Virus record (IMG/VR): IMGVR_UViG_3300032116_000001
Span: 314,849 to 378,848 of that record
Strand: one strand, 5' to 3'
DNA: 64,000 nt
The position numbers and the translations under genes were made by a program. How positions within the stretch are numbered: position 1 is the first letter of the stretch; each line of letters starts with the position of its first letter. Shown piece after piece: positions 13,232-60,486 of this stretch. Under the pieces are notes generated by a model, which saw only the letters and a list, made by a program, of their open reading frames with translations, was not told where the DNA came from and searched no databases.

Positions 13232-14338
13232 TTAAACAGGAGTTAATTCATCCCATAATTTCCAATAAGGTCCAAATGGGATATATGGCTTAAAATCAAA
13301 CATAAACTGGCGAAGTTCTCTCCAAAGCATCCAGAATTCATTGGCTTTTTCCGCAGACCATTTATTTTCGTAATCTAAGATATCATTAAGGGCCTGATTA
13401 TATTCCTTGTTGAGTGGGTGCTTTGTGTCAAAAATATATTTATTTCCGTGTGCTTCGGCCTTCGCCTGCCACATTTGATTGAAATCATTACTTCTTGTCA
13501 TTTGCATGATTGCTGATTCGCGTAAATCTTCCATCGCTGCATCTATTTCTGATATTTTTTGTGCAAATGGCTCCACAGATGAACTTCCGCCAAGATAATC
13601 ATCTCGTATCACTTTGAAAGTAGGTATGATTCTTTGCAAAAAGTAGCGTTGCATTTCTTCAGCGGCAAATGCAATACCCTGAGAATGATCCAGCTGGTGA
13701 CCGTGAAATTCTCTGAAATTTTCTCTCTTCTCATGAGGATTGATAACGGGGTCTTCTTGGGGAGGCGGTGGGTCCCAGGTTTTGACTTTGATTGCATGAA
13801 TTCCATAAGGAGTCAGGTCTAATTCTTCCCCATTGGCAAAGGCTTTGCCCATCGCCTCTAAGGCCTGATCTAATCTAACGTCTCTGTTAAGTTCATTCAA
13901 ATCGTAATCATCTTGCTCCGAAGAAGATGCTTTCCGTTTACCAAAATTATTGTTTAAAACACTTAGGTCAACAATTTCCATAGTTGAGCCATCGGGGTCA
14001 GTTGTAATAATACCATCATAGCCATCTGCGATCAGAGCATTTGAAAGCTCTAAGCCAGTTTTATTATATCGGTCACGAAGTACTTGCTTCCAATTGTCTT
14101 TATCACTATACCCGCCTTGGCCCCAAGGAATGATTAAGGGATTGGTAAATTCAATTTCTCCGTGCTCCCAGCCCTCAACAGGAGAAGTGCCTTCCTCGAT
14201 CTTTGTTACATATTTCCCATGTGGCTCAATATCTTGGCCATATGTATCTTTAAAATCAGGTGCGCTAATAGGATTCCGCTGGTACCTAATTTTGTAAGTA
14301 TCTTTCTTTTGCTCTGACTGTGCCTTTTTATACCACAT
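13232..14338 (-). CDS. MWY-tagged protein, ART-PolyVal-like N-terminal domain
   Basis: Starts MWYKKAQ; NPL...ADGYDGII...EIVDL pattern. Confidence 0.6.
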   Translation of the reverse strand: MWYKKAQSEQKKDTYKIRYQRNPISAPDFKDTYGQDIEPHGKYVTKIEEGTSPVEGWEHGEIEFTNPLIIPWGQGGYSDKDNWKQVLRDRYNKTGLELSNALIADGYDGIITTDPDGSTMEIVDLSVLNNNFGKRKASSSEQDDYDLNELNRDVRLDQALEAMGKAFANGEELDLTPYGIHAIKVKTWDPPPPQEDPVINPHEKRENFREFHGHQLDHSQGIAFAAEEMQRYFLQRIIPTFKVIRDDYLGGSSSVEPFAQKISEIDAAMEDLRESAIMQMTRSNDFNQMWQAKAEAHGNKYIFDTKHPLNKEYNQALNDILDYENKWSAEKANEFWMLWRELRQFMFDFKPYIPFGPYWKLWDELTPV

Positions 14339-14341
14339 GTG

Positions 14342-16909
14342 TTATCCTCCTTCGTATTTGTAATATGGATTTGCAGGTCTCCGACGAACACTGACTTCTT
14401 CAGAAGAATCTGGCCCTATGCTTTCTCTAAGCACCTTGCCAGTTTCTATGTCATCAATAGAAACTGGCCCAATGTATTTTCGGGGATTGTGAGACTCAAT
14501 GTAAAACTGCATTCTCTCAGCATCATCACCATAGGCATCATACAATCCTCTTGCTATTTCTTGAAGTGATGCTTTGTTCAGGTTATATGTTTCGACATGC
14601 TTGCCCTGCACCCGATGCCAACCAAAATTTTTAAGGGCGTATGTTCTGGGATCGCGAAAACCATCCCAGTCTTTATCCATTTGTTCACGCGCTTCTTTGG
14701 GGTCTAATTTAGGGTTTTGTTTGAGTTTTTTCCAAAGCAAGTATTCATACAGGTCTGCATCTTCATGGGCGTTTTCAATCGCATCTCCATTTCCATTGTG
14801 AATACTTGTTAAATGCTGATTATAATCATCTAAGTCCCTAATATTATTTCTGAAAATATCATACGCATGCTCCCTTGTTATTGGCCACTCAGAATGATTT
14901 TCTATGTCAAAGCCAAGTCTATTGAGCATTTCCTCTTCGGCCAACATTTCATGATTAATATCGCCAACATCACCGTCTGCATAAACAGCCTCGCCGTCTT
15001 TTAGCCACCATTCGTTAGCTGTGCGTTGCATTGACGTCACTCTTGTCATCAACTGATCTGCCATGCGATACATACCCTTCTTATCACATGCGCTTGATAA
15101 AATCAACATTGATTGAATCTGATTGTAAAGGCTCCTCGGGATTTTATTTGCTTGGCGCAATTGTTTTCTTTTCGAATATTTCCATGTGCCATCGAATTTT
15201 TGATCAAACTTTGGATCATTCATATCCTGATCGCTTAAATCGTCAACGTGCGTAAATAATTTGGGGTAATCAGCAGAATTGATTTTCTTTATTTCAAGCA
15301 GTATTGGCAGTTGTTGGTATCCAGTTAATTCTTCAAACAAAGACATATATTCGTCATCTATAGACTCGCCCAACTGTGATTGGATTTCCATATCCAAGCC
15401 GTATGGAAGTGTACTGGTGATATATTGTTGATGTTCGGGGTTTGAATAAAGCTCAGCGGTGTTAATTCGATATTCTTTTTTATATTCATCAATACTTTTA
15501 ATCGAATTATCATAAAGTGTTTTTACATTTGAAGTGTTCATCCACCAATATATCCCACGTTCTTTATTGCTCTTGCTTTCCCAATCAGCAAAGTTTAATG
15601 CAAAGGGTTTGTGAATTTCATCTGGGTTTGCTATCATAGCAGACATATTTGCAATGTCAGATTTCATAGCAACTTCGATCATGGTTTTTGCAACGACATC
15701 CATGTTATTTGTGTACTTTATGTTTGTTGGCACTTGCTTTCGGGTTGTGGGGTCCCATTGCACATCAGTCAAGGCCTCGGAAACATTTTCGTATATTGTC
15801 TCAATGTCATTGTGTCTTATGTCTTTTTCAACTTGTTTATAAGGGATTCCATAATCATCATCTACAACATCCTCGTCGTAATGAGCCCCGTAAGCGCTAT
15901 CATATATTCCTGCCACAATAGATTCAATTTCCTTGCTACTACCCCAATCAATTTCTTCTTCAAAGGGGCTTTGGCTCGACCATTCTGCGTCACCTAGATC
16001 ACCGAACCACTCAGAAATTCGCTCCCGATCTTTTGAATCAGGGGTTTTATTACCAAATCCCTTAATCTGTAGGATTGTATTGGTTTTTCCGTCCATTTCT
16101 ATTGTTACGTGCGGCTTGTTGTCTGGGCTTCTGAGTGAAAATATTCTAATATCTCCTCTTTCTACTTGATAACAATAAGAACCAACGCAGTGAGACATTT
16201 GATTGCCCTCTACAGCTAGGTCATTCTTATTTGTCACCATGGTCATAAACCATCCGTCTTCCCATTGATACACTACACGCTCGTCAATAATTTCTCCATT
16301 TTCGTCTCTTTTTAATGGCGTGTAAATTTTACCTTCACCTTTACCAGCTATCATCTGATGCCAATCGTTTGATTTCTCAAGTGCTTGAGAGAGGTTATAG
16401 CTCGTGATGTCTAGCCGTGGTGTTTCAATTTTTTGATTACGATACCAGTCGTATATTTCCCCAAAAAGATTGTTGAAATTTTCATACACACCTTGACTAT
16501 TCAAATTAGTAAACAATCTGTAAACGTATCCGCCATTTTCATCGGGCTCTAATCTTAACTTTCTTAATTGAGTTAAGGCCCATTTTTGAAACAAATCATC
16601 GTATCTAGCCACGAGTTGTAATTCCATCGGAGTCCACGATGTTGCTTTGGACTGGGGTACAAAAACAGATTGTTCAAGTGTATTCCAATCGAGGCTTGGG
16701 TCTTGGTTCAATCTGTTGACATAAATGGGCAGCTTGTCTTGTGGTAAATGCTTTAAATTTTCAATCACATCTGCTTTTGTTCCGCGAGCTTGCAAGTTGT
16801 CAATTAATTCTTGCAGACCAGCCACAATAACACGACCAAGCCTCATAGGCTTTGCGTCAGATGTTTTGTTTGCGCCAAGGACGCGAGAAAATTTAAAACT
16901 ATGCTTCAT
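14342..16909 (-). CDS. large multidomain protein with PcfJ-like domain
   Basis: DLAVEGNQMSHCVGSYC...IFSLR...PHVTIE; internal helical tag LSSACDKKGMYRMADQL. Confidence 0.7.
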   Translation of the reverse strand: MKHSFKFSRVLGANKTSDAKPMRLGRVIVAGLQELIDNLQARGTKADVIENLKHLPQDKLPIYVNRLNQDPSLDWNTLEQSVFVPQSKATSWTPMELQLVARYDDLFQKWALTQLRKLRLEPDENGGYVYRLFTNLNSQGVYENFNNLFGEIYDWYRNQKIETPRLDITSYNLSQALEKSNDWHQMIAGKGEGKIYTPLKRDENGEIIDERVVYQWEDGWFMTMVTNKNDLAVEGNQMSHCVGSYCYQVERGDIRIFSLRSPDNKPHVTIEMDGKTNTILQIKGFGNKTPDSKDRERISEWFGDLGDAEWSSQSPFEEEIDWGSSKEIESIVAGIYDSAYGAHYDEDVVDDDYGIPYKQVEKDIRHNDIETIYENVSEALTDVQWDPTTRKQVPTNIKYTNNMDVVAKTMIEVAMKSDIANMSAMIANPDEIHKPFALNFADWESKSNKERGIYWWMNTSNVKTLYDNSIKSIDEYKKEYRINTAELYSNPEHQQYITSTLPYGLDMEIQSQLGESIDDEYMSLFEELTGYQQLPILLEIKKINSADYPKLFTHVDDLSDQDMNDPKFDQKFDGTWKYSKRKQLRQANKIPRSLYNQIQSMLILSSACDKKGMYRMADQLMTRVTSMQRTANEWWLKDGEAVYADGDVGDINHEMLAEEEMLNRLGFDIENHSEWPITREHAYDIFRNNIRDLDDYNQHLTSIHNGNGDAIENAHEDADLYEYLLWKKLKQNPKLDPKEAREQMDKDWDGFRDPRTYALKNFGWHRVQGKHVETYNLNKASLQEIARGLYDAYGDDAERMQFYIESHNPRKYIGPVSIDDIETGKVLRESIGPDSSEEVSVRRRPANPYYKYEGG

Positions 16910-17883
16910 GAGATATTCGATTTGCCCCCAGCTTTATCTGTGTATGTTGTGGTTTTTGGCTTCTTTCCATCGCCAGGCTCACGTTCCTTTCGCGATTTTT
17001 GCTTCATGCGCTCTTTGCGCTCCTTGTCAGACAGGCTTTTGGCTTTATTAGCGGGTGTGCAAACGGGCTTTTTGCCTTTGCTACTATCACTTCTGCCGCA
17101 TTCTTCGTAGCCACCATCTTTTTTTGGTCGCCGTACATCCACCCACTTTTCGTTCTTAAACCAATCGTCTAAACCACCGTGGTTTTTGGCATATTTGTTG
17201 GTTATTAAATCTATAGCATCCGCAAGGTGGTGTTTGCCATAGCAATCGGCTGCCTGCGCAGTTTTTGCTAATTCATCTGACACGAAAGTGACATCATCGT
17301 TGTCGTCGTCATCGCCGTACCATTCCGTGCGTCGTTTTGCAGCCTTGTCAAAAGCGCCAAGACAATCACTTAAATATTCAGCTAATATAAAATCAGGCGT
17401 ATCACTGTTGTTTTCTAGAGAAAATGAATTAATTAGGCTTTCAAGTTCTTTTCGGAAGGATTTATGATCGTTAGCTTCTTTAATGTCGTCGTCTGATTCC
17501 TGATCCCACTCTGATTGTGGTACTAAATTGATAATTTGAAATCCGACATCTGGCAATTCAAATGCAATGTGATTAGCGTCAATAGCTGCAGGAGCGTTCA
17601 TTGCTTCATCAGGCATAGAATCAATAAATTCACCGATAGTGATCCATTCTTTTGAATCCCAATTTCCTTTCGGGTCTACGCGATAAAGATTTGAGTCATA
17701 ATTGTTTAAAGCGTCTTCCAAGGTCATTTCGGACTCTATGACATCTTTGTGTTCCAAAAGTGATTTATTTTCTTTGGCAACACGAATAAACACATCATGA
17801 AGAGATGATGCTTCATGATGTAAACCAAGCCCTTCAATCAAAGACGCAGTTTGATGAATTTTTGCAAGCAAATTTTGATTCAT
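16906..17883 (-). CDS. phage protein with two helical tags and a basic C-terminal module
   Basis: TASLIEGLGLHHEASSLHDVFIRVAK; GGLDDWFKNEKWVDV...CGR...PVCTP. Confidence 0.7.
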   Translation of the reverse strand: MNQNLLAKIHQTASLIEGLGLHHEASSLHDVFIRVAKENKSLLEHKDVIESEMTLEDALNNYDSNLYRVDPKGNWDSKEWITIGEFIDSMPDEAMNAPAAIDANHIAFELPDVGFQIINLVPQSEWDQESDDDIKEANDHKSFRKELESLINSFSLENNSDTPDFILAEYLSDCLGAFDKAAKRRTEWYGDDDDNDDVTFVSDELAKTAQAADCYGKHHLADAIDLITNKYAKNHGGLDDWFKNEKWVDVRRPKKDGGYEECGRSDSSKGKKPVCTPANKAKSLSDKERKERMKQKSRKEREPGDGKKPKTTTYTDKAGGKSNIS

Positions 17884-17884
17884 T

Positions 17885-18451
17885 TTATTTACCCGTCATG
17901 TCCCCGACTGTTTTGCCTGCTTCCCACATTCGGCAAGACCAATATCTTGCCTTTGTCTTTGGGCCAGGATTATCACAATTATGTCGGGCGCGGAAGTTCT
18001 TTCGGCGCTCAGGATTGTCTCTTTTAATATCAGTCGTTGGATCGCCGAAATTAACTTTTTTAACCTTATCACCATCTTTGACATAGACAGAGAATTTTTT
18101 AGGCCCATCTGGGGTGCGAAAAGGCTTGTTTAGTGGTTTGTTGGACTTTGCCTGAGCTTCTCTTTGTGGAGATTTTTCCAATTTGATAATTTTATCAAAA
18201 TAACCAATGTCAATAAGCCGAGGGTCATCAATGTATTTTTCCACCGCATCATTAAACTCGGCTCTTGCTTCATAGTGTAGTGTTTCCACGTTTTCTTCAA
18301 AATCAAGCTCTTCTAACTCTTTTGAAGATGACCTTTGATTAGTTGTGTTGACATTTGCTATCCGACTCAAAACATCAGTAAGGATATCAGCTTCTTCGTG
18401 CAGGCCTAGTTTGTCCAATTCGTGTGCCACTTGAGCAATCTTTTTCAGCAT
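17885..18451 (-). CDS. helical-tag phage protein
   Basis: Start MLKKIAQVAHELDKLGLHEEADIL (ATG 18451); C-terminal VNFGDP...RRKNFRARHNC...ARYWSC module. Confidence 0.75.
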   Translation of the reverse strand: MLKKIAQVAHELDKLGLHEEADILTDVLSRIANVNTTNQRSSSKELEELDFEENVETLHYEARAEFNDAVEKYIDDPRLIDIGYFDKIIKLEKSPQREAQAKSNKPLNKPFRTPDGPKKFSVYVKDGDKVKKVNFGDPTTDIKRDNPERRKNFRARHNCDNPGPKTKARYWSCRMWEAGKTVGDMTGK

Positions 18452-20461: not shown

Positions 20462-20547
20462 GTCAACTACCACACGCACAAGGCGTGTGGCTTGCTACAA
20501 GCTCAGCCTTCGGCTGAGCGAACAATAGGGAGGTTGACTGCTCCCCT
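20462..20547 (-). ncRNA. TnpB omega-RNA scaffold / IS right end
   Basis: GTCAAC...GTTGAC closing pair with hairpins GCTCAGCC-GAA-GGCTGAGC and CCACACGC..GCGTGTGG overlapping the tnpB stop. Confidence 0.75.
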
Positions 20548-21584
20548 AAAGAACCTATATTCTTACTGGCATTAAAGTCTGCATTCTCCGTGTGTCCGCA
20601 GGACATGCAGAGAAACACAGTTTGACTTTTTCTATTGGCTTTTTCACAATATCCGCACTCACTACACGTCGCAGACGTGTAGTGAGCAGGAACAATAGCT
20701 AAAGGAACTCCATAGAGTTCAGCTTTGTAAGTAATGTAGCTTCTGAGTTGGGCGAATGCCCAACTCATTCTTTGACTTCTATTCACTCGCCTGACCGTTA
20801 CTCTTTTGTTGATATGCGTTAGCTCTTCGAGAGCCAACGCATATCCGAGTGCCTTTGCTTTTGTTACTAAAAGTTTTGAAATGACGTGATTTGTGTCTTT
20901 TCTAAATCTGGATTCTTTTTGTCCACATTTCTTGATTCTTCTTTTTGCAGAGCGTGTTCCACGCTTCTGCAATCTTTGTCGATGAGAGTGATATTGTTTT
21001 CTTTTCTTCTCGATGTGTTCTCCCGAGAACACATCTCCTAAAGAACTTACAGCGATTTGTTTCACTCCTAAGTCTATTCCTATAACGTCTTTGGCGTTAT
21101 AGGCTGATTCTGTTGGAATTTCTAAAGTACAAAGAAGATAGAACTTGCCATTTTGATAAACTAAATCAACTTGCCCCTTTCTATATTTGAAGCGTTCTTT
21201 GTCGTATATTTGGATTGGGATATTGATTCTTCCATCATTAGTCCAGATATTAACTAAATCAGTTCCTTTAAAAGTGATTACTCTGTCGTCGTAGACGACA
21301 GCAGAAGTCTTTTTGAAGTAATTTGGATTTTTGCTTCTTTTCTTTTTATATGTAGCGGTAACCACATCAATAGCCCTTATTATTAATTGAGAAGAGAAGC
21401 TTGGATGCGTTTCACGCATCCCATGATATGCATTTCTTTGCAATTGAACTTTATTATAAGTTTCTGTTGAATGAGCTATTGTTGAAAGCTCATTACAAAC
21501 ATCATTGAAAGTATTCATAGTGCGCAGAAGCGCACTATGATGAATCTCATTTGTATTGAGTTTCACTTTCAGAGTGATATTCAC
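20463..21584 (-). CDS. tnpB: RNA-guided endonuclease TnpB (IS200/IS605, tnpB-only)
   Basis: GIDLG, ALEEL and NADFNA catalytic triad; CSECG/CMSCG Zn finger. Confidence 0.95.
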   Translation of the reverse strand: MNITLKVKLNTNEIHHSALLRTMNTFNDVCNELSTIAHSTETYNKVQLQRNAYHGMRETHPSFSSQLIIRAIDVVTATYKKKRSKNPNYFKKTSAVVYDDRVITFKGTDLVNIWTNDGRINIPIQIYDKERFKYRKGQVDLVYQNGKFYLLCTLEIPTESAYNAKDVIGIDLGVKQIAVSSLGDVFSGEHIEKKRKQYHSHRQRLQKRGTRSAKRRIKKCGQKESRFRKDTNHVISKLLVTKAKALGYALALEELTHINKRVTVRRVNRSQRMSWAFAQLRSYITYKAELYGVPLAIVPAHYTSATCSECGYCEKANRKSQTVFLCMSCGHTENADFNASKNIGSLGEQSTSLLFAQPKAELVASHTPCACGS

Positions 21585-21738: not shown

Positions 21739-22524
21739 ATGAGATTAAAAACGAAACAAGAAATTTCAAAGATGTTTATCACTGGGGCCATTTTAGCCGA
21801 TGCCCTTAAAATCATGAAAGAGTCAGTGGTGCCAGGTATCACAACCTTGGAAATTGATTCTATAGGAGAATCGTATGTTAAGAGTTGTGGTGCAGTGGCC
21901 GCATTAAAGGGATTTAAGCCCCGATTTTCCGATCATGTTTACCAGCATGCAACTTGTATTTCAGTTAATAATCAAATTATTCACGCCCCGCCCTCCGACT
22001 ATACGATAAAAAAGGGGGATATTGTAACCTTGGACATGGCTATATCTAAAGCTTATTGGTATGCCGATGCGGCTATCACTATCGTAGTAGAAGACAATGA
22101 CAGTGATGAATACAAAGAGTCAAAAATACTATCTGAATATACACACTTGGCACTTTTGTCAACGATTGAAAAAATTATGTCAGGAGACATAAAAAAAACA
22201 AGCGACATTGGAAAGCATATTCAGAAAATGGCCGATAAAAAAAACTTCGGCGTGGTATCTGCGGCTTGCGGTCACTCGATAGGTCAAGAATTACATGAGC
22301 TAGGAATACAGATTCTTAATTCTTATGAAGAAGGAGATTCGGGGGTAAATATTGTGCCAGGAATGACATTCTGTATAGAACCTATTTTTACAATGGGATC
22401 GGGTGATATTACGAAAGACAAGCTTGATCCTTGGACGATATATACTTCTGATGGCTCTCATTCGGCTCACTGGGAACACACCGTGGCAATTACAGAAAAT
22501 GGCCCCTTAATATTGACATTATGA
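21739..22524 (+). CDS. map: methionine aminopeptidase, type I
   Basis: SVNNQIIH, LDM, YAD, GHSIG, LHE, IEP, EHT metal ligands all present. Confidence 0.93.
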   Translation: MRLKTKQEISKMFITGAILADALKIMKESVVPGITTLEIDSIGESYVKSCGAVAALKGFKPRFSDHVYQHATCISVNNQIIHAPPSDYTIKKGDIVTLDMAISKAYWYADAAITIVVEDNDSDEYKESKILSEYTHLALLSTIEKIMSGDIKKTSDIGKHIQKMADKKNFGVVSAACGHSIGQELHELGIQILNSYEEGDSGVNIVPGMTFCIEPIFTMGSGDITKDKLDPWTIYTSDGSHSAHWEHTVAITENGPLILTL

Positions 22525-26983: not shown

Positions 26984-27871
26984 GTGTGGTATAGGTCAGC
27001 ATCTGAGTCATTGAACAAATCGCGTTACAATCGCGATTTGTCTTCGATTATGCAAGACACTTTTTTCCACGGCACGGCTGAAAACTTTGAAGGTCCGCTT
27101 AAAGGCGGCGCATATGATAACATTATATGGACAGCAAATAATCCAGCTGTAGCACAAAATTACATTCCAGCTTCAGGAGCGCAATCGGGTTTTTCTCTTG
27201 ACAAATGGGCTGAGGATCACGAGCCATATTCTCACTTTCGATATCATCGGGGCACGGACGTTGCACTTTTGAAACAAATGGGATATGGCTATCCTACTGA
27301 TGAAGAATTATATCCGAATGGTGAGCTTAAAAACTATCGTATAAAAGATCGCCATGCAACACATGGAGAGATGCGGGAATATTTAAGATCGCTGGGATAC
27401 GACCCAGAAGAAGATTTTTGGATTAACACAGAATATGTTGATGGTGACGAGATTGTCCGCCCCAAGAATTACAAAATGCCAGGCAGGCTTTTTATTGGGC
27501 ATCCTCAAAAGCCTTTGAATATTTTTGATACTACTGAGTATTTAGAAGGCGATGAATCTAACCCAGCTTATCACATGCATGATGTTTTTAATCTTATTAA
27601 AGGCAAGGGATATCACGGCGTTAAAATACCAGATTTTGCTCAGTCAAAAAACTGGGGAAATGTGCATCACGAAAGTGTTGGAATTTTCCCCGAATATGTT
27701 GATCATTTAAACTGGGATGTTATACCAGCGGTAAATTTTGACTGGGGAGATAATCTTTTAGGTGTTTATTCGACGCCTGACTGGGATATTCATCATAAGC
27801 AACAGATACTTTCTGCTCATCAAAGTGGCGAAAAAGTTGATCCTCGATTATTAGACTGGGCTCAAAATTAA
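26984..27871 (+). CDS. MWY-tagged protein, ART-PolyVal-like
   Basis: GTG start MWYRSAS; FFHGT..F, IWTANNP.VA.NY, GYHGVKI. Confidence 0.65.
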   Translation: MWYRSASESLNKSRYNRDLSSIMQDTFFHGTAENFEGPLKGGAYDNIIWTANNPAVAQNYIPASGAQSGFSLDKWAEDHEPYSHFRYHRGTDVALLKQMGYGYPTDEELYPNGELKNYRIKDRHATHGEMREYLRSLGYDPEEDFWINTEYVDGDEIVRPKNYKMPGRLFIGHPQKPLNIFDTTEYLEGDESNPAYHMHDVFNLIKGKGYHGVKIPDFAQSKNWGNVHHESVGIFPEYVDHLNWDVIPAVNFDWGDNLLGVYSTPDWDIHHKQQILSAHQSGEKVDPRLLDWAQN

Positions 27872-28671
27872 ACGATTGACTGTCTTTCTGTTTTCTTTTC
27901 CCTTGTTGATTTTAACATTCTCCAGTTCTCTTTAATAAATTGAACAGCTTCTGAATATGTTTTTCCAGCTACTAATTCTCTTCCTGTATAATCCTCAACC
28001 ATCCAGTTACCATAAACTTCTTTTTTCATCGGGAAAATCATTCCCTTGTTTACGCTTGGCCCCCAAACAATAACTTGGGATTGCTGATCACCATGATGAT
28101 CGAAAAGAATTCCTCCGCTATAAAACACAACTGCTTCGTTTCCATACTGCCCTGTAAAAGCAGTGTGCTCAGCGTCATTTGAATCCACTTGAAATGCAAA
28201 ATTATAACCTGGGTCTTCCATGCGGTCTTCCTTCCAGGTTGATAGATGAACTCCCTCAATGTCAGGATGACCATATTTAAATCCTTCATTTTCGATATCT
28301 CTTGCATTTTCCGTGAAATGCACAAGCCAGTCGGGCCTGAGCGCTCTCTGATATTCTAATGAATTATATGCAGGACTTTCGTATGCATTTGAATTATCAT
28401 ATTGGTATCTTTCGCGAGAGTCATTTAAAAAACTAACAAATGCTTTGCGATAATCATCAGGCGCATTGTTCAACCATGTATAGCCTCGTTCATCTGGGTA
28501 ATCTTCCACGTCCTCCATGATGCTTGGGTCTAATCGGTATTCTTCGTGAGAATCCAAAAAATTATCCACAAGAAAGGCATAATCATAAGGATTGGTTCCC
28601 TCTCGTACATAATCTCTCAAATAAGCAAGCTCTGTGCTATATCCCGCTTTTTTGATGCTTCTGTACCACAT
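27868..28671 (-). CDS. MWY-tagged protein, possible ART-like domain
   Basis: MWYRSIKKA; WLVHFT..I..EGF, HLST, QSQVIVW. Confidence 0.55.
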   Translation of the reverse strand: MWYRSIKKAGYSTELAYLRDYVREGTNPYDYAFLVDNFLDSHEEYRLDPSIMEDVEDYPDERGYTWLNNAPDDYRKAFVSFLNDSRERYQYDNSNAYESPAYNSLEYQRALRPDWLVHFTENARDIENEGFKYGHPDIEGVHLSTWKEDRMEDPGYNFAFQVDSNDAEHTAFTGQYGNEAVVFYSGGILFDHHGDQQSQVIVWGPSVNKGMIFPMKKEVYGNWMVEDYTGRELVAGKTYSEAVQFIKENWRMLKSTREKKTERQSIV

Positions 28672-28780: not shown

Positions 28781-29671
28781 ATGTGGTACAAACTTGCTCA
28801 GTTGGCATCTGTTGACGCTCCAGTTCTTGGAAACCAATCTGGCCCCGCTCATTTAGGAAGCGGCCAGGAAATGCTTATTGAAGCAGGCGGAGATAGTGTT
28901 CAAGAAGTTGTTAGTAATTTTATGAATAGCAGCCAGCCTGTATTCTTTAGAGATTCAAATGGCCAGCAATATCTGATTATTCATGGCTCGCCCGCACAAG
29001 ACGGAGCTATGTATTTTGATGGTGGGGCAGCGGGGTCAATTAGGCATGATGAATTAGGCGATTGGATGCGCACTCAAGGATATGATCCAGGTGCCACGAA
29101 AGTGATAGCATGTCATGGTGGCCAAATTATGACGCTAAACTCACCTGGCATTACCCCTGCCTTCGATTACACTGGTCAACTTGAGATTGCCGCGCCAAAT
29201 GATGGCAGCGGAGATTTCCTTTCAATTAGAGGAGCCTCTGCAAGATACGCGCTTTCCAAGGAGGGACGAGGCAAAGTTGACATAGATGGTATCAAGGTTT
29301 GGATAGAATATCCCAAAGGCTCAACTCGATCAGGCAAGGGCAAGGACGGCAAAGAATGGAGCCGAAAGATGGAGTGTGATTATGGCCGAATCATGGGAAC
29401 AGTAGGGGCTGATGGCGATGCTATTGATATGTTCCTTGGGGGAAATCTTGACGCCGATAAAGTTTTTATCGTAGATCAACTGAATTCTGATGGCGACTTT
29501 GATGAGCATAAATGTGTTATGGGGTGCGACACCTTAAAGCAAGCAAAAGAATTATATCTCTCCAATTATCCAAAAGACTGGAAATGCGGGAAAGTTACAG
29601 AAATGAACATTTCTGAATTTAAGAAGTGGCTTAAAAAAGGAGACAAAAAAGTCCCAGCATCATCGGAGTAA
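28781..29671 (+). CDS. MWY-tagged protein: caspase-fold-like domain plus InPase domain
   Basis: Start MWYKLAQ at ATG 28781; IIHG...VIACH; IEYPKGSTRSG...YGRI.GT.GADGDAIDMF...FDEHKC. Confidence 0.7.
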   Translation: MWYKLAQLASVDAPVLGNQSGPAHLGSGQEMLIEAGGDSVQEVVSNFMNSSQPVFFRDSNGQQYLIIHGSPAQDGAMYFDGGAAGSIRHDELGDWMRTQGYDPGATKVIACHGGQIMTLNSPGITPAFDYTGQLEIAAPNDGSGDFLSIRGASARYALSKEGRGKVDIDGIKVWIEYPKGSTRSGKGKDGKEWSRKMECDYGRIMGTVGADGDAIDMFLGGNLDADKVFIVDQLNSDGDFDEHKCVMGCDTLKQAKELYLSNYPKDWKCGKVTEMNISEFKKWLKKGDKKVPASSE

Positions 29672-29673: not shown

Positions 29674-31236
29674 ATGTGGTACAAGCAGGCTCAAAACACC
29701 GTTGAAGAAAATAAAAAGTCCAAGTCTTTTTATTCTCATATGCTTCGCGTCGTTGAAGAAAAAATGGGCTCAAAAATGCCTGCTCAAGACCTTAAAAGAC
29801 TGCTTCAAAAATCTGGCGTCAGTGCCGAAGAAATGAGTTGGGTACACCTTGACGAGTATTTGGAAAACAACCCTATTGTTTTTAAATCAGATTTGATAAA
29901 TAGAATACAGTCAAAGCTGCACAATATTGTAGTTCACGAAATGGATTATGAACAAGAACATGAAGACAATCGTGATACCACATGGGGAACGCAATTTGAT
30001 GATGAAGATTACTTCAAGGGCTATGAAGACTATACTCTGCCCTACGGGGATGATTATAAGGAGTTTTTAATTACAATCGGCGCGAAACCAGAAGATGAGT
30101 TTATTGATTATTTGATGAAGATAAATACTGGTTACGAGCGAATGGGTCGCGAAGCACTAAAGAAAAGCATTGAAGAGCATCCTGGTTCGTGGCGCAATCA
30201 TTGGGGACATTGGAAGCGTTCTTTGGGGGAGGACTTCCCCGATTATGAATCTAGGCACTTCGAGGGTCATAAAAACCCCATAGCTCACATGAGAACGACT
30301 TCAAGAACGTCTAAGGACGGAAAGAAGTCTTTACATATTGAGGAAATACAAAGCGACTGGCACCAGGATGGGCGCAAACATGGATATGATCGGCCAGGAC
30401 GTGCCAAAGATATAATCACAGTGTCGAAGCTGTGGGAGAAGGTTGCTGTTTTTAAATCGGCCACGGAAGAAGAAAAGAAAGAATATGAAGCTGCAAAAAC
30501 AAGGTTAGAAAGAGATCAGTGGCGACCCGACACTGTCCCCCCTGGCCCATATGCGAAAAACTGGCACGAATTGGCGATGAAGCATGCTATTGATATGGCA
30601 GTACGCGGCGGTTATGATCGCGTAACATGGAACACGGGTGATATTAGCCGAAACATATTTGGGCTATCTAATGTTTTAGATAAATTAGAATTAACAAAAG
30701 ATCAAAACGGAAGAATTTATATTCGTGGCTGGATGTCAGATAAAATAAAAGTTAACCAACAAGCTGTCGAGTCAAAAGAGCTTGCAAATTATATAGGCAA
30801 AGACCTGGCAGAGAAATTTTTATCATCGGGGCAAGAATCAATGGTTATTCAGGGTAAAGACTTGGAATATGGCGGCTACGGATTGCAAGCATTTTATGAT
30901 CACATTCTGCCAAGCTTTACTAAAAAATACATTAAAAAATGGAACGGGGACGTTGGCGAGCATGAGGTGAATCAGGGTCAATACATGCACTACATTCAGG
31001 AAAGGCCAGCGCCTGATGGTTCGTGGATTGTCCGTCAATTTAGTCCATCAGGATTAAATGAATCAACTGAATCTTTTCCGTCTTTAGAAGAGGCGAAAAA
31101 GTTTAAGGAAGAGAACAGAGTCAAATCTTGGGCGAAAGTTCACGGATTTGATATTACCCCCGAAATGCGAGAAGATATACAGAATAATGGACAGAGACTT
31201 GCCACATCCATTGTGGCCAGAAGAGTGAAAGGATAA
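29674..31236 (+). CDS. MWY-tagged protein resembling a large polyvalent/ejection-protein domain
   Basis: MWYKQAQ; HF..KNPIAHMR...LHIEEIQSDWHQ.GR..GY; AFYD.ILP. Confidence 0.7.
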   Translation: MWYKQAQNTVEENKKSKSFYSHMLRVVEEKMGSKMPAQDLKRLLQKSGVSAEEMSWVHLDEYLENNPIVFKSDLINRIQSKLHNIVVHEMDYEQEHEDNRDTTWGTQFDDEDYFKGYEDYTLPYGDDYKEFLITIGAKPEDEFIDYLMKINTGYERMGREALKKSIEEHPGSWRNHWGHWKRSLGEDFPDYESRHFEGHKNPIAHMRTTSRTSKDGKKSLHIEEIQSDWHQDGRKHGYDRPGRAKDIITVSKLWEKVAVFKSATEEEKKEYEAAKTRLERDQWRPDTVPPGPYAKNWHELAMKHAIDMAVRGGYDRVTWNTGDISRNIFGLSNVLDKLELTKDQNGRIYIRGWMSDKIKVNQQAVESKELANYIGKDLAEKFLSSGQESMVIQGKDLEYGGYGLQAFYDHILPSFTKKYIKKWNGDVGEHEVNQGQYMHYIQERPAPDGSWIVRQFSPSGLNESTESFPSLEEAKKFKEENRVKSWAKVHGFDITPEMREDIQNNGQRLATSIVARRVKG

Positions 31237-33184: not shown

Positions 33185-35209
33185 ATGAAATCATTAGCTA
33201 TTTCGCGTGTGCAAACGATGCTAAGAAGTGCATCGAGTTTAGATAAAATTGGCAAGTATGCAAGTGCTGATATTTTATCTAATGCTGCGCATCATATGTT
33301 AAAAAAGATTTCTCAAACAAACATGTCAACAAGAATTCCTGCTGATTCATACATGGAAAAATATATGGATCAATACAAGGATTATTTTGGAGAGCCAACT
33401 ATTGATAAAGATGGTTCTCCAAAATATTATACGGATCAATATGATGATATAGACCATTCTTATGTCTTTGCGCTGAAAAATAACCCAACCGCGATAGATA
33501 ATCTTAGACCAAGTGAATTAAAATACTGGCATAAAAGACAGACGCAGATGCATGATTACGAGCCAGATCATCAAACGTGGGATCATTTAAAGCATTCTTT
33601 TGAAAGAGGAACTCCCGAATATGATCATTATCTTAGGCTTTTGTCTCGCGATCCTGTTTACGAAAATATCAATCCCGATGATTTGATTAATTATGTGAAA
33701 TCACAGCAAGATCAATATAGCCGTGGAGACTGGAGCAATCCAACGGACTGGAATGTTGCTCATTCTCTTCTTCGAGCTGCTAATCACTATTTAATACATG
33801 ATAATTTTGATTATAAAAATTATGTTTCTGACATCGAAAGTCCTTACAATCTTACAAGCCCCTTAAATCAGCAGCAAGTTGATGATCGCCGAGCCCTTAA
33901 TTTAGTAATGGAACGAGATAAACCCATGGTCAAACTGCCTCCTACAGAGGCATACAGACTGGGCGACGGATCATTGATCCATTTTAACATGGGTCGCAGA
34001 GACACTATATTAAGACATTTTACAAAAGATGATGTCGATAAGCCTTACGACGAACTAATTGCGCGAAGCCTGTTAAGCAATGATAAAGACATAGCAAGCG
34101 AAAAGCTCAACAGCATTAAAGAAAAAATGAAAAATATTTATCGGATGACCCCCGAAAACACAGAAAATTATTATCATTATCTGAAAGTTTTCGCTATGTA
34201 TCCTAATTTAATCGGAACATCATTAAAAAACATTGATGAAATCGTATCTAATCTAAATGAAGGGCAAGACGGGTCAAATGACATGGGAAGACTCATGGTT
34301 GTCTTTAATAAAAATTGGCGACAATGGGTGGCTAAATTTAATAATGATGTTCACGAAGCTGCGCAAATCTTGCCAATGGGCAGTACACAGGACTTGCGCG
34401 GACTAGGCGATTTGCTAATGCAGTGGTATGGCAAGGTCAAAACTACAGATTTGTACACAATAGCCTCATATTGGCCAAATCTTACCGCAGAAGATAAATC
34501 ACTTCCTATTGATCAACTAGCTGATCGAGTTCGATATTACAAAGTCAGGCAGCTTTTTAAAGCAGAAAGCATTAATCATCCTTCTTTTGCAATCGAGGCA
34601 GCCAAATGGTGGCAATCTGCCGAGGGCGACGAGGATGATGCATGGCTTAACATTGATGAAGATGATGACACAGAGCCGTTCGATTATGAAAACATTGAAA
34701 AATTGTTTATCGACTCTCAAAATGTACCCCTCCCTGTTTGGGCTTCATACACAGCAAGTATTGGTGGGTTGACTGGAAGATTTTTGCCTCGTTCAGACGT
34801 CCGCGGGTTGTTCCTGGGTCAATACAGCAATTCCTGTCAACATCCCTGGGGAGTTGGAGCAAGTTGCGCAATTCACGGCCAAACCTCGCCGCATGGAGCA
34901 TTTTTTGTTGTTGAAGACCAGAAAGGCAACATCATCGCCCAAAGTTGGGTGTGGGAAGATTATGACGGAGATGTTGTTTTTGATAATGTCGAGGCGCTTG
35001 GCATTGGCGACAGAAGAATGCCAATAGTTCAGTCAATTTATAAAACTGTAGCGGAACAAATGGAAGGCCGTATAGTTCACATAGGAACGGGCGGAAGCGA
35101 CTTGGATTTGGAACCATTTAAAGACACAGACTTTCGACTCGCGCCAAATGATTATTATGGGTATCGAGACTCCACAAGACAAAAAATACTCGCAGACAAC
35201 ACTTATTAA
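33185..35209 (+). CDS. helical-tag protein with a C-terminal putative GNAT-like domain
   Basis: SASSLDKIGKYASADIL...KKISQ; CQH..G.GASCAIHG..AQSWVW..VFDNVE. Confidence 0.65.
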   Translation: MKSLAISRVQTMLRSASSLDKIGKYASADILSNAAHHMLKKISQTNMSTRIPADSYMEKYMDQYKDYFGEPTIDKDGSPKYYTDQYDDIDHSYVFALKNNPTAIDNLRPSELKYWHKRQTQMHDYEPDHQTWDHLKHSFERGTPEYDHYLRLLSRDPVYENINPDDLINYVKSQQDQYSRGDWSNPTDWNVAHSLLRAANHYLIHDNFDYKNYVSDIESPYNLTSPLNQQQVDDRRALNLVMERDKPMVKLPPTEAYRLGDGSLIHFNMGRRDTILRHFTKDDVDKPYDELIARSLLSNDKDIASEKLNSIKEKMKNIYRMTPENTENYYHYLKVFAMYPNLIGTSLKNIDEIVSNLNEGQDGSNDMGRLMVVFNKNWRQWVAKFNNDVHEAAQILPMGSTQDLRGLGDLLMQWYGKVKTTDLYTIASYWPNLTAEDKSLPIDQLADRVRYYKVRQLFKAESINHPSFAIEAAKWWQSAEGDEDDAWLNIDEDDDTEPFDYENIEKLFIDSQNVPLPVWASYTASIGGLTGRFLPRSDVRGLFLGQYSNSCQHPWGVGASCAIHGQTSPHGAFFVVEDQKGNIIAQSWVWEDYDGDVVFDNVEALGIGDRRMPIVQSIYKTVAEQMEGRIVHIGTGGSDLDLEPFKDTDFRLAPNDYYGYRDSTRQKILADNTY

Positions 35210-36675
35210 TTATTCGATGATGTTAGCTGCTTTCTGGCGTCATATAATTCTCTAAATTTTCTAATTTTTTCTCTGACTTGTTGATTATTTATTTTTAATC
35301 CGTTAATCAAAATTGTCAGGAATCTTGCGCGTAAATCGTCACGTTCCCATGATGACATTTTGCGGTCGAGAAGTGAGTCAAACTGGCTTTGCCATTTTTC
35401 CATTTCCTCTTCATACTCATCTTCGTCTTCAAAATTATTCTCTGGCTCCTCTGGCATTAAATAATATATTTCGTCTTTCAATTCTTTTTCTGCCTTGTTT
35501 TTATAATCTTCAAAAAAACTGTCAACCTCATCGTATGAAGTTGTGTAATTCCAATAATATTTATCGAACTTACGCTTTTCGGCTAACTGTTCATCTCTTT
35601 TTGCTAAAATCTTTAGTAAACTATAAGCAGCATCATCAGCATAACGATCTTCTAACTGTCCCCACGTATTTTCAAATTTGTCCAGAGTGTTTTCCACTGC
35701 ATATAATACATCTAATTTAGTGAAATCAGTGTCTTGAGCCAGTCCATATTGATCTATTTCTGCCCCGTATTGATCGATATGATCGGCAACAGATTTCATG
35801 TCAACTCCGTCTAAATTAAATTCTTTTGTAATCAGCGATTCTTCCCATTTTTGCACTGGCAGATTTTCAACCCACTCTTTAATATATGATTGGTAATCTT
35901 CGCTTAGCACACGATTGGAGTGCCCCTTAATTTCAGAAATCTCCCCATATTCGTTCATCCTTATGGTCGCTACTGGATGATTTGTTTCGTCTCTTAGGGA
36001 AAATATTTGGTATTTCCCTTCTTTTACATCATCGCAGTATGTTCCAACGCAGTGATTCATTTTATTTCCCTCCGCTCTAAGATCATTCTCAGATGTGACT
36101 AACTGCATCGTGTACCCATCATCGTAATCGTAAACTACATTTGCGGGACTAATTGGCTCATACATTAATCCAGAACCCTTGCCAGCCATCATTGTGTGCC
36201 ATTCTTCGGACATTTTGACAGCCGAGGCCCAATCATAAGAAGAGAGCTGGAATCTCGATTGTCCTTGGTCATCGAGGGGGTGACGTGCGATTTCGTAATT
36301 ATACCAATCTTTAATCGCATCTGCCTGATTAATAATTTCCAGATTGTCAATGGCATATTTTCTACCATTGGGGTCCAACCTCATTTTCTTTACTTGAATC
36401 AAAAGCCATTTTGCAAATTGTGGAATATTTTGATAGCGCATGTAAAGATTAGATTCAAAATTGCTTTGCTGATTTTGTTCAGTTTTGATATTAGCAAGAT
36501 TTTGAATTTCTTCTATCGTGGCGTTTGGTTTGTTTCTGACAATATTCACATAAATTTTTTGGTGATCGGGGTTCTGATCACCAATCCACGCAATAACATG
36601 ATCGGGAACACCAAGTGACTTTAAATATTCCTCTTGGGTCCCCGATATGCAAACTTTTGCGTATTTATACCACAC
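35206..36675 (-). CDS. MWY-tagged PcfJ-like protein
   Basis: GTG start MWYKYAK; DLRAEGNKMNHCVGTYC...IFSLR...PVATI; paralogous to 14342-16909. Confidence 0.75.
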   Translation of the reverse strand: MWYKYAKVCISGTQEEYLKSLGVPDHVIAWIGDQNPDHQKIYVNIVRNKPNATIEEIQNLANIKTEQNQQSNFESNLYMRYQNIPQFAKWLLIQVKKMRLDPNGRKYAIDNLEIINQADAIKDWYNYEIARHPLDDQGQSRFQLSSYDWASAVKMSEEWHTMMAGKGSGLMYEPISPANVVYDYDDGYTMQLVTSENDLRAEGNKMNHCVGTYCDDVKEGKYQIFSLRDETNHPVATIRMNEYGEISEIKGHSNRVLSEDYQSYIKEWVENLPVQKWEESLITKEFNLDGVDMKSVADHIDQYGAEIDQYGLAQDTDFTKLDVLYAVENTLDKFENTWGQLEDRYADDAAYSLLKILAKRDEQLAEKRKFDKYYWNYTTSYDEVDSFFEDYKNKAEKELKDEIYYLMPEEPENNFEDEDEYEEEMEKWQSQFDSLLDRKMSSWERDDLRARFLTILINGLKINNQQVREKIRKFRELYDARKQLTSSNN

Positions 36676-57696: not shown

Positions 57697-57738
57697 ATTT
57701 GTTATACGCTTTGTGTTACACAAAAATTAGCATATGAT

Positions 57739-60486
57739 TTACTTTTTCCATTTTTTAAAATTAAAACTCATCCTTGCTTGATAAAATGGTTCAGTTTCAT
57801 CTCTAAAAATAGCATCATATCCTGGTCTTTTTGTCGGAAAATCTAATTCCATGTTTTTAGGCTCTTCTAGAGTTCTTCCGCCTTGTGGCCCTTGCGACCA
57901 ATTAAAATCGGCATTTGAAATGTGCTGTAGCTCTTGATAATTTAATGGCTCTGCGGTTGGCGCATAAACCTGTGGTATCTCTTCGCCATCTTTTGTGGTT
58001 AATGTTGCGGGCGGTTTCCAGTTGTGATCAGCCACAACATAAGACATATTTTTAAGTTCTCTCGTGATAAAATTCATAATGACCGACTGAATAGAACTGT
58101 CTATTTCAAAGTCATACCCACCGTTAAGTGCTTTAAATTTCATTGCCTTAAGTTTCTTTAACTCATCTTGATGGTTTTCTTTACTGTTGTCCCCGTCTTC
58201 TGAATCAATTTGCTCTACAATTCTTAATTGCTCTTCGTAATACTTGATTTTTTTAATGATGTCAAGAAGAACTTCTCTTCGGCGTTGACGAGCTGATTCC
58301 ATAAGGTGAGACATTACTTTCTGCTTAGCTCGCTCCACCCTTTTATTCGCGGCTTCGATGGGATTTTCAGCATAATTATATGGATATTGTCCGTCATTGA
58401 GTTTTTTGTATTCATTAATTGGATGAATACCGCCCATCGCGGCGTAAGATTCATGCATCATAAACTGTTCTGTTATTTCCTCTAAAACAGCCTCTTTAAC
58501 AATTTCAGTGTCGCGCAGTCGCTCAATTTGTTGCGTAAGAACACTTCGCCATTTTGGCATTTCACCATAGACACGCGCCAAAATTTCAGTGTAAGATGTT
58601 AAATATTGCCTTGATCTGTTCTTACTTTGGTACTCAGGGTTTTCTCGAACAAATTCTCCGCCTGTGGCAAGATAATTTAGCGCATGAGCTATCTCGTGCG
58701 AAACAATTGCGTCCATAACTTCATCACTAGATATGTTAAGTATTTTTAGTATGGGCATGTCTTTGTACTGAGAATTAATTCGATCCTGGCGAACAAAAAT
58801 GGCAGGTATGCGCTTGTTTACGTTTTCATCTTTATTAAAAGATGGAATAAAAACACCAAGAAAATTCAAATCATTAAGATTATCGTACTTCAAGGATTTT
58901 GTTTCTTGAAGTTCATTTTCAAAATCAGAATTAGTGACCGTATACACTTGGATAAAGTTAGCCCAACGCCGCACAATATCGGGGTCTAATCTTAGTGACT
59001 CTCCAATTTTCAGAGCCATGTCTAAATATTTCCCGTTCGCGGCCTCTGATAGGGGCTCATGCACAATCGACCCCTTATTGATGTGCCTCTGCATCAATGA
59101 TGCATTGGCTTCTTCTTTTGCTTTTTTCTCTCTCTCATTTAATGCTCGGCTGGCTTCTTCTAAGGCATTTCTTTCTTGTTCCTCTCGATGTTTTTTTGTG
59201 GCATCTTCAATTTTGGAATAAATTTCATCCGAAACCATAATATAGTCTATTGTTCGGGGATAATCTTTGACAAATTCAATTATGCTTTCCAAAGGCGCAT
59301 AACCAATTTTAACTAAAAATTCATGTACGATACCGTCAGGGTTGTCTTTATATTTCTCCCATAAATCATCAAATATTTTTTTTACAATCGGATTGTTTTT
59401 GATTTTTTCGGCTTCTTCATATTTAATGTTTTGGCCAGGATTATGCCATGTCATTTTGCCAATAAGCTGTTTTAAAACTTGTTTGGCTTGATCGTCGTCA
59501 ATATTTGGGAACGCATCATCTAAAACAAAATCAATATTATCTGAAATTTTGGTGTTGTTTACACTTTTAACGGCCTCTTCTATCGCAAATAATTTATCTT
59601 GCTCGTCTCTCGGATCATTAGTCTTTGTTTCTGCAACAATTTTTGCATATCTCAGATGATCTTTTGTCGGAAGCCCACATGTAAAAATAGTTGTGATCAT
59701 ATCAGAACAAACATCTCGATTATTCCATACAGCATTTATTTTTTCAAAAGGGTGCAAAGAATCGATTAATTCTTTAATGAATTCTTCGTCTGGATTTACT
59801 AATTTTTGACAAGCTTCTTGCACGCCAGTGTCATCGCCATTTACGATTAGAAATCTTCGGTAAAATGGGTATTTTTCAGAAATATAATTAACAATATTTT
59901 CTCTTTGAGGGTCATTTTTTAACTCAGGCTTTGCTTTCCAGTCCATTCCTGACATAATAGCAAATTTTACTTTGGGAGACAAAAATAACCCGAGTTTCTC
60001 AAGGTTCAGAATGTTATTATAGCCGCCGCTTAAAAAGTTAGATAGCCAGTAAGAGTCGTCTGTATCATAGCTAATCATTGGGTTTGAGTACGGCTTGTAA
60101 TATTGATCTAACTCCGACAAGAGGCTGGAAAGCGGAACCAATTCAGCGTATAATGAAAACCTTAAATGTGCATATTTGGGGTTGGATTCGTATAATATTA
60201 TGCAATATTTCAAAAAATTTACACAAGCGTATAGTTCATGCGTAATTGTGTTTCTTACACCAAGTGCATCACTCTCTGCTAATTCTGATCGCCATTGCCT
60301 TAGTTTTTTAGATACTTCGTTTTTAAAATAATGAATAATTGAATCATGTGATGGTAAAAACTCTATTCGCCCTACATATTGATATGGAGCAAGAGTTTCT
60401 TTCACCGTTTCCAAAGGCGCGATACGCCCCTGAAGAACATTATCAGCCCCTGCCACTTTTATGTTTTTAGCAGAACAATACCACAC
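57739..60486 (-). CDS. MWY-tagged large protein with a zincin metallopeptidase motif
   Basis: GTG start MWYCSAKNIKVA; VSHEIAHALN...YL...TEILAR. Confidence 0.75.
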   Translation of the reverse strand: MWYCSAKNIKVAGADNVLQGRIAPLETVKETLAPYQYVGRIEFLPSHDSIIHYFKNEVSKKLRQWRSELAESDALGVRNTITHELYACVNFLKYCIILYESNPKYAHLRFSLYAELVPLSSLLSELDQYYKPYSNPMISYDTDDSYWLSNFLSGGYNNILNLEKLGLFLSPKVKFAIMSGMDWKAKPELKNDPQRENIVNYISEKYPFYRRFLIVNGDDTGVQEACQKLVNPDEEFIKELIDSLHPFEKINAVWNNRDVCSDMITTIFTCGLPTKDHLRYAKIVAETKTNDPRDEQDKLFAIEEAVKSVNNTKISDNIDFVLDDAFPNIDDDQAKQVLKQLIGKMTWHNPGQNIKYEEAEKIKNNPIVKKIFDDLWEKYKDNPDGIVHEFLVKIGYAPLESIIEFVKDYPRTIDYIMVSDEIYSKIEDATKKHREEQERNALEEASRALNEREKKAKEEANASLMQRHINKGSIVHEPLSEAANGKYLDMALKIGESLRLDPDIVRRWANFIQVYTVTNSDFENELQETKSLKYDNLNDLNFLGVFIPSFNKDENVNKRIPAIFVRQDRINSQYKDMPILKILNISSDEVMDAIVSHEIAHALNYLATGGEFVRENPEYQSKNRSRQYLTSYTEILARVYGEMPKWRSVLTQQIERLRDTEIVKEAVLEEITEQFMMHESYAAMGGIHPINEYKKLNDGQYPYNYAENPIEAANKRVERAKQKVMSHLMESARQRRREVLLDIIKKIKYYEEQLRIVEQIDSEDGDNSKENHQDELKKLKAMKFKALNGGYDFEIDSSIQSVIMNFITRELKNMSYVVADHNWKPPATLTTKDGEEIPQVYAPTAEPLNYQELQHISNADFNWSQGPQGGRTLEEPKNMELDFPTKRPGYDAIFRDETEPFYQARMSFNFKKWKK

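Follow-up and report, generated by a model that had tools for sequence, protein, structure and literature searches.

The internal proteins of phage T4 are diverse, fast-evolving anti-defence proteins whose only common part is a capsid-targeting sequence (CTS) of 10–20 residues; this peptide brings them into the scaffolding core and is cleaved off afterwards (PMC3012670, PMC5694885). Polyvalent proteins represent another arrangement, in which 2–15 domains are combined in a single polypeptide (Iyer et al. 2017, PMC5512222). Here we analyzed the terminal 64 kb (hereafter referred to as the window) of the 378,848-bp jumbo-phage contig IMGVR_UViG_3300032116_000001 (40% GC), in which seven genes encode proteins sharing an N-terminal tag that begins with M-W-Y. 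Proteins identical to those of the window occur on at least 24 contigs of other assemblies, one of which is 248 kb long. According to our best explanation, M-W-Y-[KR]-x-A-[QK], or M-[NST]-W-Y-[KR]-x-A-Q in sister phages, would be a clade-specific peptide address label with which a group of jumbo phages, many with a phage-G-type capsid, marks stand-alone enzyme modules at their extreme N-terminus. We give about an even chance to the reading that the tag is an address for capsid loading, by analogy with the T4 CTS.

The seven open reading frames (ORFs) named in the original prediction were all recovered, each with the M-W-Y start quoted for it (Table 1, genes 1–7), and position 4 of the tag of gene 7 (MWYCSAK) departs from the K/R of the motif. 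Three of the seven genes start with GTG (genes 2, 6 and 7), as had been claimed. The GTG starts of genes 6 and 7 are backed by public gene calls (489 and 915 aa, respectively), and for gene 2 a 51%-identical homolog with its own start MWYRKA could be aligned from residue 1. A Shine-Dalgarno sequence had been said to be missing from four of the genes; by our reading, five of the seven lack one of the GGAG type. The sequence DTGTGGTAY was found at 10 sites on both strands of the window, compared with 1.72 ± 1.15 sites (maximum 5) in 100 dinucleotide-preserving shuffles, and 7 of the 10 were the first start codon of ORFs of 267–915 aa, while the other three were chance sites (17515, followed by 3 codons; 29983, 33 aa; 52106, internal, with 212 open codons upstream). 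Given how often W and Y occur in the window itself, a start with MWY in at least 7 of its 77 genes had a probability of ~4e-13. Together, the shuffle counts and this gene-start probability ruled out a chance origin of the tag. Outside the tag, the seven proteins showed no mutual similarity, and the sole paralog pair includes an untagged gene. All three strict MWYKxAQ matches in the contig fell inside the last 64 of its 379 kb, indicating that the tagged genes form a hot spot. When 11 kb of the window were compared with 50,697 phage records by megablast, no match was obtained. In public gene calls, gene 2 is given a start at an ATG further downstream (273 aa) and one assembly lists the InPase gene (gene 4) with 249 aa; since such calls often miss the tag, protein databases under-represent tagged N-termini, especially those started with GTG.

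IMG/VR was searched with a DNA pattern encoding M-W-Y-K-x-A-Q, which gave 56 matches in 55 stretches. About 45 of the 56 were located at the start of a real ORF, and these were spread over many contigs, many of them 110–480 kb long, in front of dissimilar proteins. As a cellular control, the identical pattern was searched in 185,579 bacterial and archaeal species genomes, where only about 10 of the 120 matches listed were ORF-start-like, most of these being short junk ORFs (Fisher's exact test for viral versus cellular ORF-start matches, p ~1e-21), indicating that the tag is a feature of the phages and not of their hosts. A host-encoded signal was ruled out by this control, and a polyprotein linker was ruled out as well, the viral matches internal to long ORFs being in unrelated proteins (such as an integrase and a tail-fibre-like protein). 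A variant longer by one residue (MNWYKK, MTWYKK, MNWYRK) was uncovered via the homologs of window protein 3, and a scan for M-N-W-Y-K-K returned at least 119 stretches, again with tandem arrays. In the viral loci fetched (~4 Mb), 172 unique ORFs start with M-(x)-W-Y-[KR], and they make up 89 BLAST-distinct families when their first ten residues are removed. Typical examples of the arrays are six consecutive MWY genes in locus L011, eight MNWY genes in L212/L309 and five in L324. Extended to related phages in this way, the motif search thus revealed a tag far more widespread than the seven genes of the window. Among cultured phages, tblastn of the tagged proteins found no homolog with a conserved N-terminus: the 915-aa protein had no homolog, PcfJ cores were matched in phages of Bacillus and Enterococcus only, and all matches of the ART and protein-5 families were internal. 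Full-text searches for the strings MWYK and MNWYK returned only irrelevant papers. A description of the tag was found neither in 8.4 million full texts nor in the key comparative papers, and two papers of Iyer and Aravind (including PMC5512222) and a 2024 preprint on phage G mention no N-terminal tag, so that it looks like an unreported address label.

The tag is an add-on and not part of the fold that follows it. Pfam domains of tagged proteins start at residues 11–18 (in tagged relatives, ART-PolyVal at residue 11, an AAA_33 kinase at 12 and NUDIX at 18), and AlphaFold2 (AF2) modelled window proteins 2 and 3 with the lowest confidence over their first 4–10 residues (protein 2: predicted local distance difference test score, pLDDT, of 92, but below 50 for residues 1–4). 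A natural tag-less comparison is provided by the untagged PcfJ paralog of gene 6 (Table 1), whose residues 23–310 align with residues 4–277 of the tagged copy and which reads PMRLGRV where the tagged copy reads MWYKYAKV. Homologs of protein 3 start with MWWRT, MNWYKK, MTWYKK, MNWYRK or MNWFQK. The tag was also traced to joints between modules. In protein 1, residues 33–128 resemble a domain found after ART-PolyVal in other proteins, and residues 135–368 resemble stand-alone proteins of 235 aa that themselves start with MWYR[KR]A; the junction between the two reads FGKRKASS, which from its sequence looks like a decayed second tag. Likewise, P0156 has a C-terminal extension beginning with NWYKKAQ. 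These two junctions indicate that tags mark module boundaries and decay once they become internal, and they fit a 'split versus fused' relationship with polyvalent proteins.

We then considered whether the peptide or the underlying nucleic acid is conserved. In 30 MWY families, Tyr of the tag was encoded by TAT or TAC at ~2:1, matching the genomes at large, Arg at position 4 by AGA, CGA, AGG and CGT, and Ala at position 6 by all four GCN codons, and upstream of the start conservation was limited to A-richness. Among ORFs picked for M-W-Y alone (near the pattern hits), position 4 was K/R in 17 of 22 families and position 6 was Ala in 13 of 22. Relatives spanning 30% to 52% GC retain the tag, and homologs at 35–60% identity kept W-Y-[KR] with variable codons although the adjoining residues had changed wholly (P0002 and P0003 for protein 1; P0163, P0165, P0166 and P0180 for protein 2; thirteen aligned sequences for protein 3; P0025 and P0027 for protein 5). 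The tag is missing from more distant homologs, as in ~115 of 120 sequences related to protein 5 and ~140 of 150 related to protein 2. The tag is therefore conserved mainly at the protein level and is lineage-specific, and the possibility raised with the original prediction, that W-Y might be conserved only as a DNA signal, was not borne out by these homologs.

An explanation in which the unit is the nucleic acid, either as an initiation or regulatory element over the start codon and/or as a block of recombination homology, with the peptide as a by-product, seems improbable to us. It would account for the lack of a Shine-Dalgarno sequence in most tagged genes, whose leaders are A/T-rich and often end with TAATT, for the position of tags at the borders of shuffled or fused modules and for the over-uniform tag codons within a genome: all 8 tags of L309 write the Asn of MNWY as AAC, a codon that makes up ~34% of Asn codons across that genome, and so do 4 of 4 tags in L317 and 3 of 3 in L373, the genome-wide share being known for L309 alone. 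Over longer distances, however, synonymous sites vary, K is replaced by R via both Arg codon families and Ala is written with four codons; the extra codon in sister phages (N, S, T or D) shifts any such element while W-Y-[KR] is still kept; and the motif is always in frame, is never found in 5' leaders and is kept from 30% to 52% GC. The uniform codons mean that a DNA-level process also acts: recombinational copying of the 5' end, or an mRNA-level constraint, also contributes within genomes, and DNA-level spreading or homogenisation of the tag-encoding 5' end within a genome is probable. Recombination through the tag can go together with a function of the peptide and is no true rival to it. 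The tandem arrays and shared tag codons within a genome would also be expected of a neutral relic, that is, one ancestral 5' end duplicated onto new bodies and functionless now. This we regard as very improbable, as W and Y are invariant over the 89 families, in homologs of ~35% identity and from 30% to 52% GC while the neighbouring residues have diverged. Moreover, the decay of internal tags such as FGKRKASS in protein 1 indicates that selection acts only at the free N-terminus, which also counts against a relic.

As for the proteins that carry the tag, the original prediction had assigned InPase, PcfJ, ART-PolyVal and zincin payloads and a domain with EEIQSDWHQ. The InPase (9.5e-45) and PcfJ (1.7e-14) matches were confirmed, and the string IEEIQSDWHQ is present in protein 5. 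No Pfam match to ART-PolyVal (PF18760) was obtained for any window protein at E up to 5, although the non-ART part of a PF18760 protein could be aligned with protein 1 and tagged ART-PolyVal proteins are present in relatives, and the zincin assignment was left with one HEIAH motif and a SprT-like match at E=0.1 (protein 7). At the same threshold, Pfam gave nothing useful for proteins 1, 2, 3, 5 and 7. When the AF2 models were searched against the PDB with Foldseek, protein 3 (pLDDT 77) had no significant match in fold, and the best match for protein 2, a RES-domain toxin, was not significant (E=0.13). Protein 2 carries a domain with the pattern 'LFHGT...GGYD...LWTA...AQxYIP', which has 376 homolog clusters and of which some copies are found within proteins of polyvalent size (2559–3198 aa). 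Payloads in tagged relatives were ART-PolyVal, PcfJ, NUDIX with HAD_SAK_2, Peptidase_M23, an AAA_33 polynucleotide-kinase-like ATPase, GNAT and HTH proteins; in two MWY-type loci (L011 and L052), the tagged M23 peptidase adjoins small membrane proteins.

Several of these payloads have homologs associated with virions. Among PHROGs, InPase has matches with the annotations minor head protein, virion structural protein and DarB-like; the protein-5 domain is found in gp34 of Pelagibacter phage HTVC028P, flanked by genes annotated as internal virion proteins, and in a gene adjoining the portal gene in MW202675.1; and a 1362-aa protein encoded between connector and tail genes in the cultured jumbo phage Tunturi_5 has a C-terminus that belongs to the tagged ART family. 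Thus, in the proposal of split effectors, a real protein-level tag on stand-alone modules that are found inside virion-module proteins elsewhere was upheld, whereas its ART and zincin assignments in the window were not confirmed. Close homologs of protein 5 start with MWYR, and the ~115 distant ones have a different leader; those in P0031–P0143, which come from other phage lineages, share a recurrent leader of their own, MSL[IV]GAL.KA.K..., before PFYSAVDEAL. Distant homologs of protein 1 in other lineages (P0005–P0019) also have their own recurrent leader, MPTLADIYSAI.... It may be that these modules are labelled N-terminally in a different way in other phage groups.

In sister phages, tagged genes were found close to the head module. 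The tag array of L212 adjoins the gene of a 290-aa major head protein (phrog_2522, E=2e-66), a decoration-like gene and the gene of an 1842-aa protein with a head-maturation-protease domain. The capsid protein of this type was found in at least 149 IMG/VR loci, including two MWY-type contigs, and its identity with the major head proteins of Bacillus phage G, LR745208.1 and Tunturi_5 is 49%, 35% and 30%, respectively. Every tagged ORF in the 80 capsid-centred loci fetched lay 0–8 kb downstream of the capsid gene, the 10 kb on its upstream side being free of them. Only MNWY-type relatives showed tagged genes beside the head module; the linkage holds in some genomes and is not a rule. The window contig shares several genes with phages that have the phage-G-type capsid, for instance that of a 697-aa protein, 46% identical to one encoded 1 kb downstream of the capsid gene in L408, and these shared genes suggest that it is related to this group; the neighbourhood of the homolog of the 697-aa protein in XacN1 was uninformative. 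Giant proteins of 1.8 kaa (thousand amino acids) were encoded upstream of the capsid and decoration genes in L212 (6174–11702, minus strand), L277 (5174–10681, minus) and L226 (2708–8277, minus; split in two). Their first ~220 residues match a head maturation protease PHROG and include a zinc-ribbon-like CxxC...C.H insert, and no Pfam family matched them.

In the capsid-loading reading, each protein would be bound via its tag to the procapsid (scaffold, core or inner shell), would thus become enclosed and would later enter the host together with the ejected DNA; once it has served, the tag would probably be removed by the head maturation protease. As cargo we would expect the enzyme set that is combined in one giant polyvalent protein for delivery by other phages, namely pyrophosphatase, PcfJ, ADP-ribosyltransferase-like modules, NUDIX-HAD, M23 peptidase, the polynucleotide-kinase-like ATPase and acetyltransferase. 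We favour a CTS-like model because a short, lineage-specific N-terminal peptide is found on many unrelated proteins, and because their payloads are virion-delivered elsewhere and are linked in sister phages to the head module with a head protease nearby; the presence of the proteins in virions, their binding partner, and the cleavage of the tag and its position are what we infer from this pattern. The T4 prohead protease cuts after a Glu, and positions 1–7 of the tag consensus contain no acidic residue, so that a T4-like cleavage site is absent from the tag. A cut after [KR]-x-A would be compatible with the conserved Ala and Gln.

A number of observations weigh against capsid loading. With 6–8 residues, the tag is shorter than any documented CTS, and its rigid position at residue 2 or 3 would equally fit recognition of a free N-terminus for processing or as a degron. 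The tag codons within some genomes, as described above, are more uniform than codon usage predicts. Only 16 of the 80 capsid-centred loci contained tagged ORFs, and the tag density downstream of the capsid gene (~0.8 per 10 kb) was no higher than that in the window (1.1 per 10 kb), so that the adjacency is suggestive but not an enrichment. The 64-kb window has no recognisable structural gene, no tag array was observed beside the head module in MWY-type phages, and the window contig was absent from the capsid-gene loci returned (80 and 79). In cultured phage G, no tagged ORF was found in the first 100 kb, which includes the head genes. Finally, the window's 1409-aa helicase-methyltransferase, of DarB type by its domain content, is untagged, and DarB of phage P1 is a packaged protein.

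Part of this evidence would suit a peptide signal with another task, such as a processing site or degron that times the destruction of the effectors (possibly via the phage's M24, methionine-aminopeptidase-like peptidase or a Clp-type unfoldase), a docking site for a chaperone, an export route or a compartment; we judge this rather unlikely. Bulky aromatics directly after Met at a strict position 2 or 3 are in line with it, and so are the Peptidase_M24 genes in the window and in the relative of 52% GC (L060, 5139–5921, minus strand), the ClpX-like gene in one tagged locus (L037, 7527–8894) and the location of the window's tagged genes amid tRNA, nucleotide and RNA-repair genes, not head genes. 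However, the M24 and ClpX genes are tied to the tag by co-occurrence in few loci, whereas the payloads are virion-delivered polyvalent modules with homologs in virion modules, and the tag arrays of sister phages adjoin the head module. With regard to export, comparison with Sec, Tat and lipoprotein signals found no hydrophobic core of 10 or more residues, twin-arginine motif or lipobox in the tag, residues 8–16 were polar and variable, and the Pfam domains that begin at residues 11–18 are those of cytoplasmic enzymes; lacking a hydrophobic core and a twin-arginine motif, the tag is not a classical export signal. In a few proteins of MNWYKK loci (L219, L271, L303, L304, L286 and L215), a hydrophobic, transmembrane-like stretch was noticed by eye 20–40 residues past the tag, where a strict automatic filter flagged one tagged protein only.

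The features of the window are listed in Table 1.

Table 1. Tagged genes and other features of the 64-kb window
Feature	Position	Strand	Description
Gene 1 (tagged)	13232..14338	-	368 aa; ATG; MWYKKAQ
Gene 2 (tagged)	26984..27871	+	295 aa; GTG; MWYRSAS
Gene 3 (tagged)	27868..28671	-	267 aa; ATG; MWYRSIKKA
Gene 4 (tagged)	28781..29671	+	296 aa; ATG; MWYKLAQ; C-terminal InPase (PF18823)
Gene 5 (tagged)	29674..31236	+	520 aa; ATG; MWYKQAQ; domain with IEEIQSDWHQ
Gene 6 (tagged)	35206..36675	-	489 aa; GTG; MWYKYAK; PcfJ (PF14284)
Gene 7 (tagged)	57739..60486	-	915 aa; GTG; N-terminus MWYCSAKNIKVA (MWYCSAK); HEIAH at residue 597
PcfJ paralog of gene 6 (untagged)	14342..16909	-	855 aa
Second-motif genes	16906-17883, 17885-18451	-	N-terminal motif
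Second-motif genes	31267-32013, 32024-32815, 33185-35209	+	Block between tagged genes 5 and 6
Second-motif gene	42453-42989	+	Helical motif
DUF5856 gene	32818-33183		Between the 32024-32815 and 33185-35209 genes
Peptidase_M24 gene	21739-22524	+	261 aa
Repeat-containing gene	43580-44377	-	265 aa
Helicase-methyltransferase gene (untagged)	46274-50503	-	1409 aa; helicase and Methyltransf_8; DarB-like domain content
TnpB-type gene	2370-3548	+	OrfB_IS605 and Cas12f1-like TNB
TnpB-type gene	20463-21584	-	OrfB_IS605 and Cas12f1-like TNB
Amidase_2 gene (untagged)	38619-39470	-	Endolysin-type
Ten tRNA genes	10-2084, 9883, 19804, 57623		

Interleaved with the MWY genes, otherwise different proteins carry a second recurrent motif, a helical one of ~35 aa that is mostly N-terminal, with few copies at the C-terminus (L-x-x-I-A-x-x-L-D-x-x-G-x-x-x-x-A-D-x-L-x-x-x-A). 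The motif was also seen in L016, L018, L030, L053, L054 and L059. A small hidden Markov model (HMM) of it matched 8 times in the window and 22 times in MWY-type loci (counts that include the 15 sequences used for building), compared with 2 in MNWY-type loci and 0 in 2184 control ORFs from cellular genomes. As to the remaining genes, the Peptidase_M24 protein, conserved in the 52%-GC relative L060, could bear on tag processing or be just one of the translation-related genes. The 265-aa protein and the N-terminal 540 residues of the 1409-aa protein share repeats with a faint Pfam INT_rpt match (52–54% identity, ~8 copies in the 1409-aa protein), and the ~40 bases upstream of their genes are nearly identical, ending with CATATAATAATT before the ATG.

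We also propose, more tentatively and with somewhat less than an even chance, a wider scheme in which a clade-wide code of 6–8 residues (W-Y-K/R-x-A-Q) would direct dozens of interchangeable enzymes, each a stand-alone protein, into the capsid to be injected together with the DNA, the second helical motif would maybe be part of the code, and the tags would be the joints at which polyvalent proteins are fused and split. If the tag is a loading signal, it offers a sequence-only route to the proteins injected by uncultured giant phages, which are mostly candidate anti-defence and host-takeover enzymes of unknown function. The 'first strike' content of jumbo phages could then be listed directly from metagenomes, a simple regular expression giving the injected arsenal of each phage, and the origin and break-up of polyvalent proteins would be explained. 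It would also be the shortest known capsid-loading peptide, a minimal portable packaging signal useful for protein packaging in the laboratory. Even with another function, a strictly N-terminal heptapeptide on at least 89 unrelated families would represent an unexplained sorting or processing code.

Compared with known systems, the tag is most readily set beside the CTS of the T4 proteins IPI–III and Alt. In both cases a short N-terminal peptide is the sole part shared by diverse proteins of one phage lineage, it stands directly before the functional domain, and the genes are scattered outside the head operon. They differ in that the T4 CTS has 10–20 residues and is removed by gp21, whereas the present tag has 6–8 residues and belongs to phages with a phage-G-type capsid protein; moreover, packaging and cleavage are proven for T4 and predicted for the tag. 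Giant phages of the phiKZ/SPN3US type are jumbo phages as well and bring many proteins into the head via N-terminal sequences that the prohead protease removes, and the transmembrane segment that follows the propeptide in an SPN3US ejection protein appears to have a counterpart in the few tagged proteins with a hydrophobic stretch. Their propeptides, however, are longer, from 20 to over 100 residues, and their conservation is mainly among paralogs, unlike the universal heptapeptide described here. In encapsulins, a terminal peptide of ~10 residues suffices to load unrelated enzymes into an HK97-fold shell, but it is usually C-terminal and belongs to a cellular nanocompartment, in which neither DNA nor ejection is involved. 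With polyvalent proteins, finally, the tagged proteins share the domain repertoire (InPase, ART-PolyVal, PcfJ-type, NUDIX, peptidases, GNAT and kinases; PMC5512222), and homologs of the payloads occur inside polyvalent proteins of 1.4–4.6 kaa in virion modules; what distinguishes the window is that its payloads are encoded by separate genes for proteins of 267–915 aa, each consisting of one or two modules and each bearing a tag of its own.

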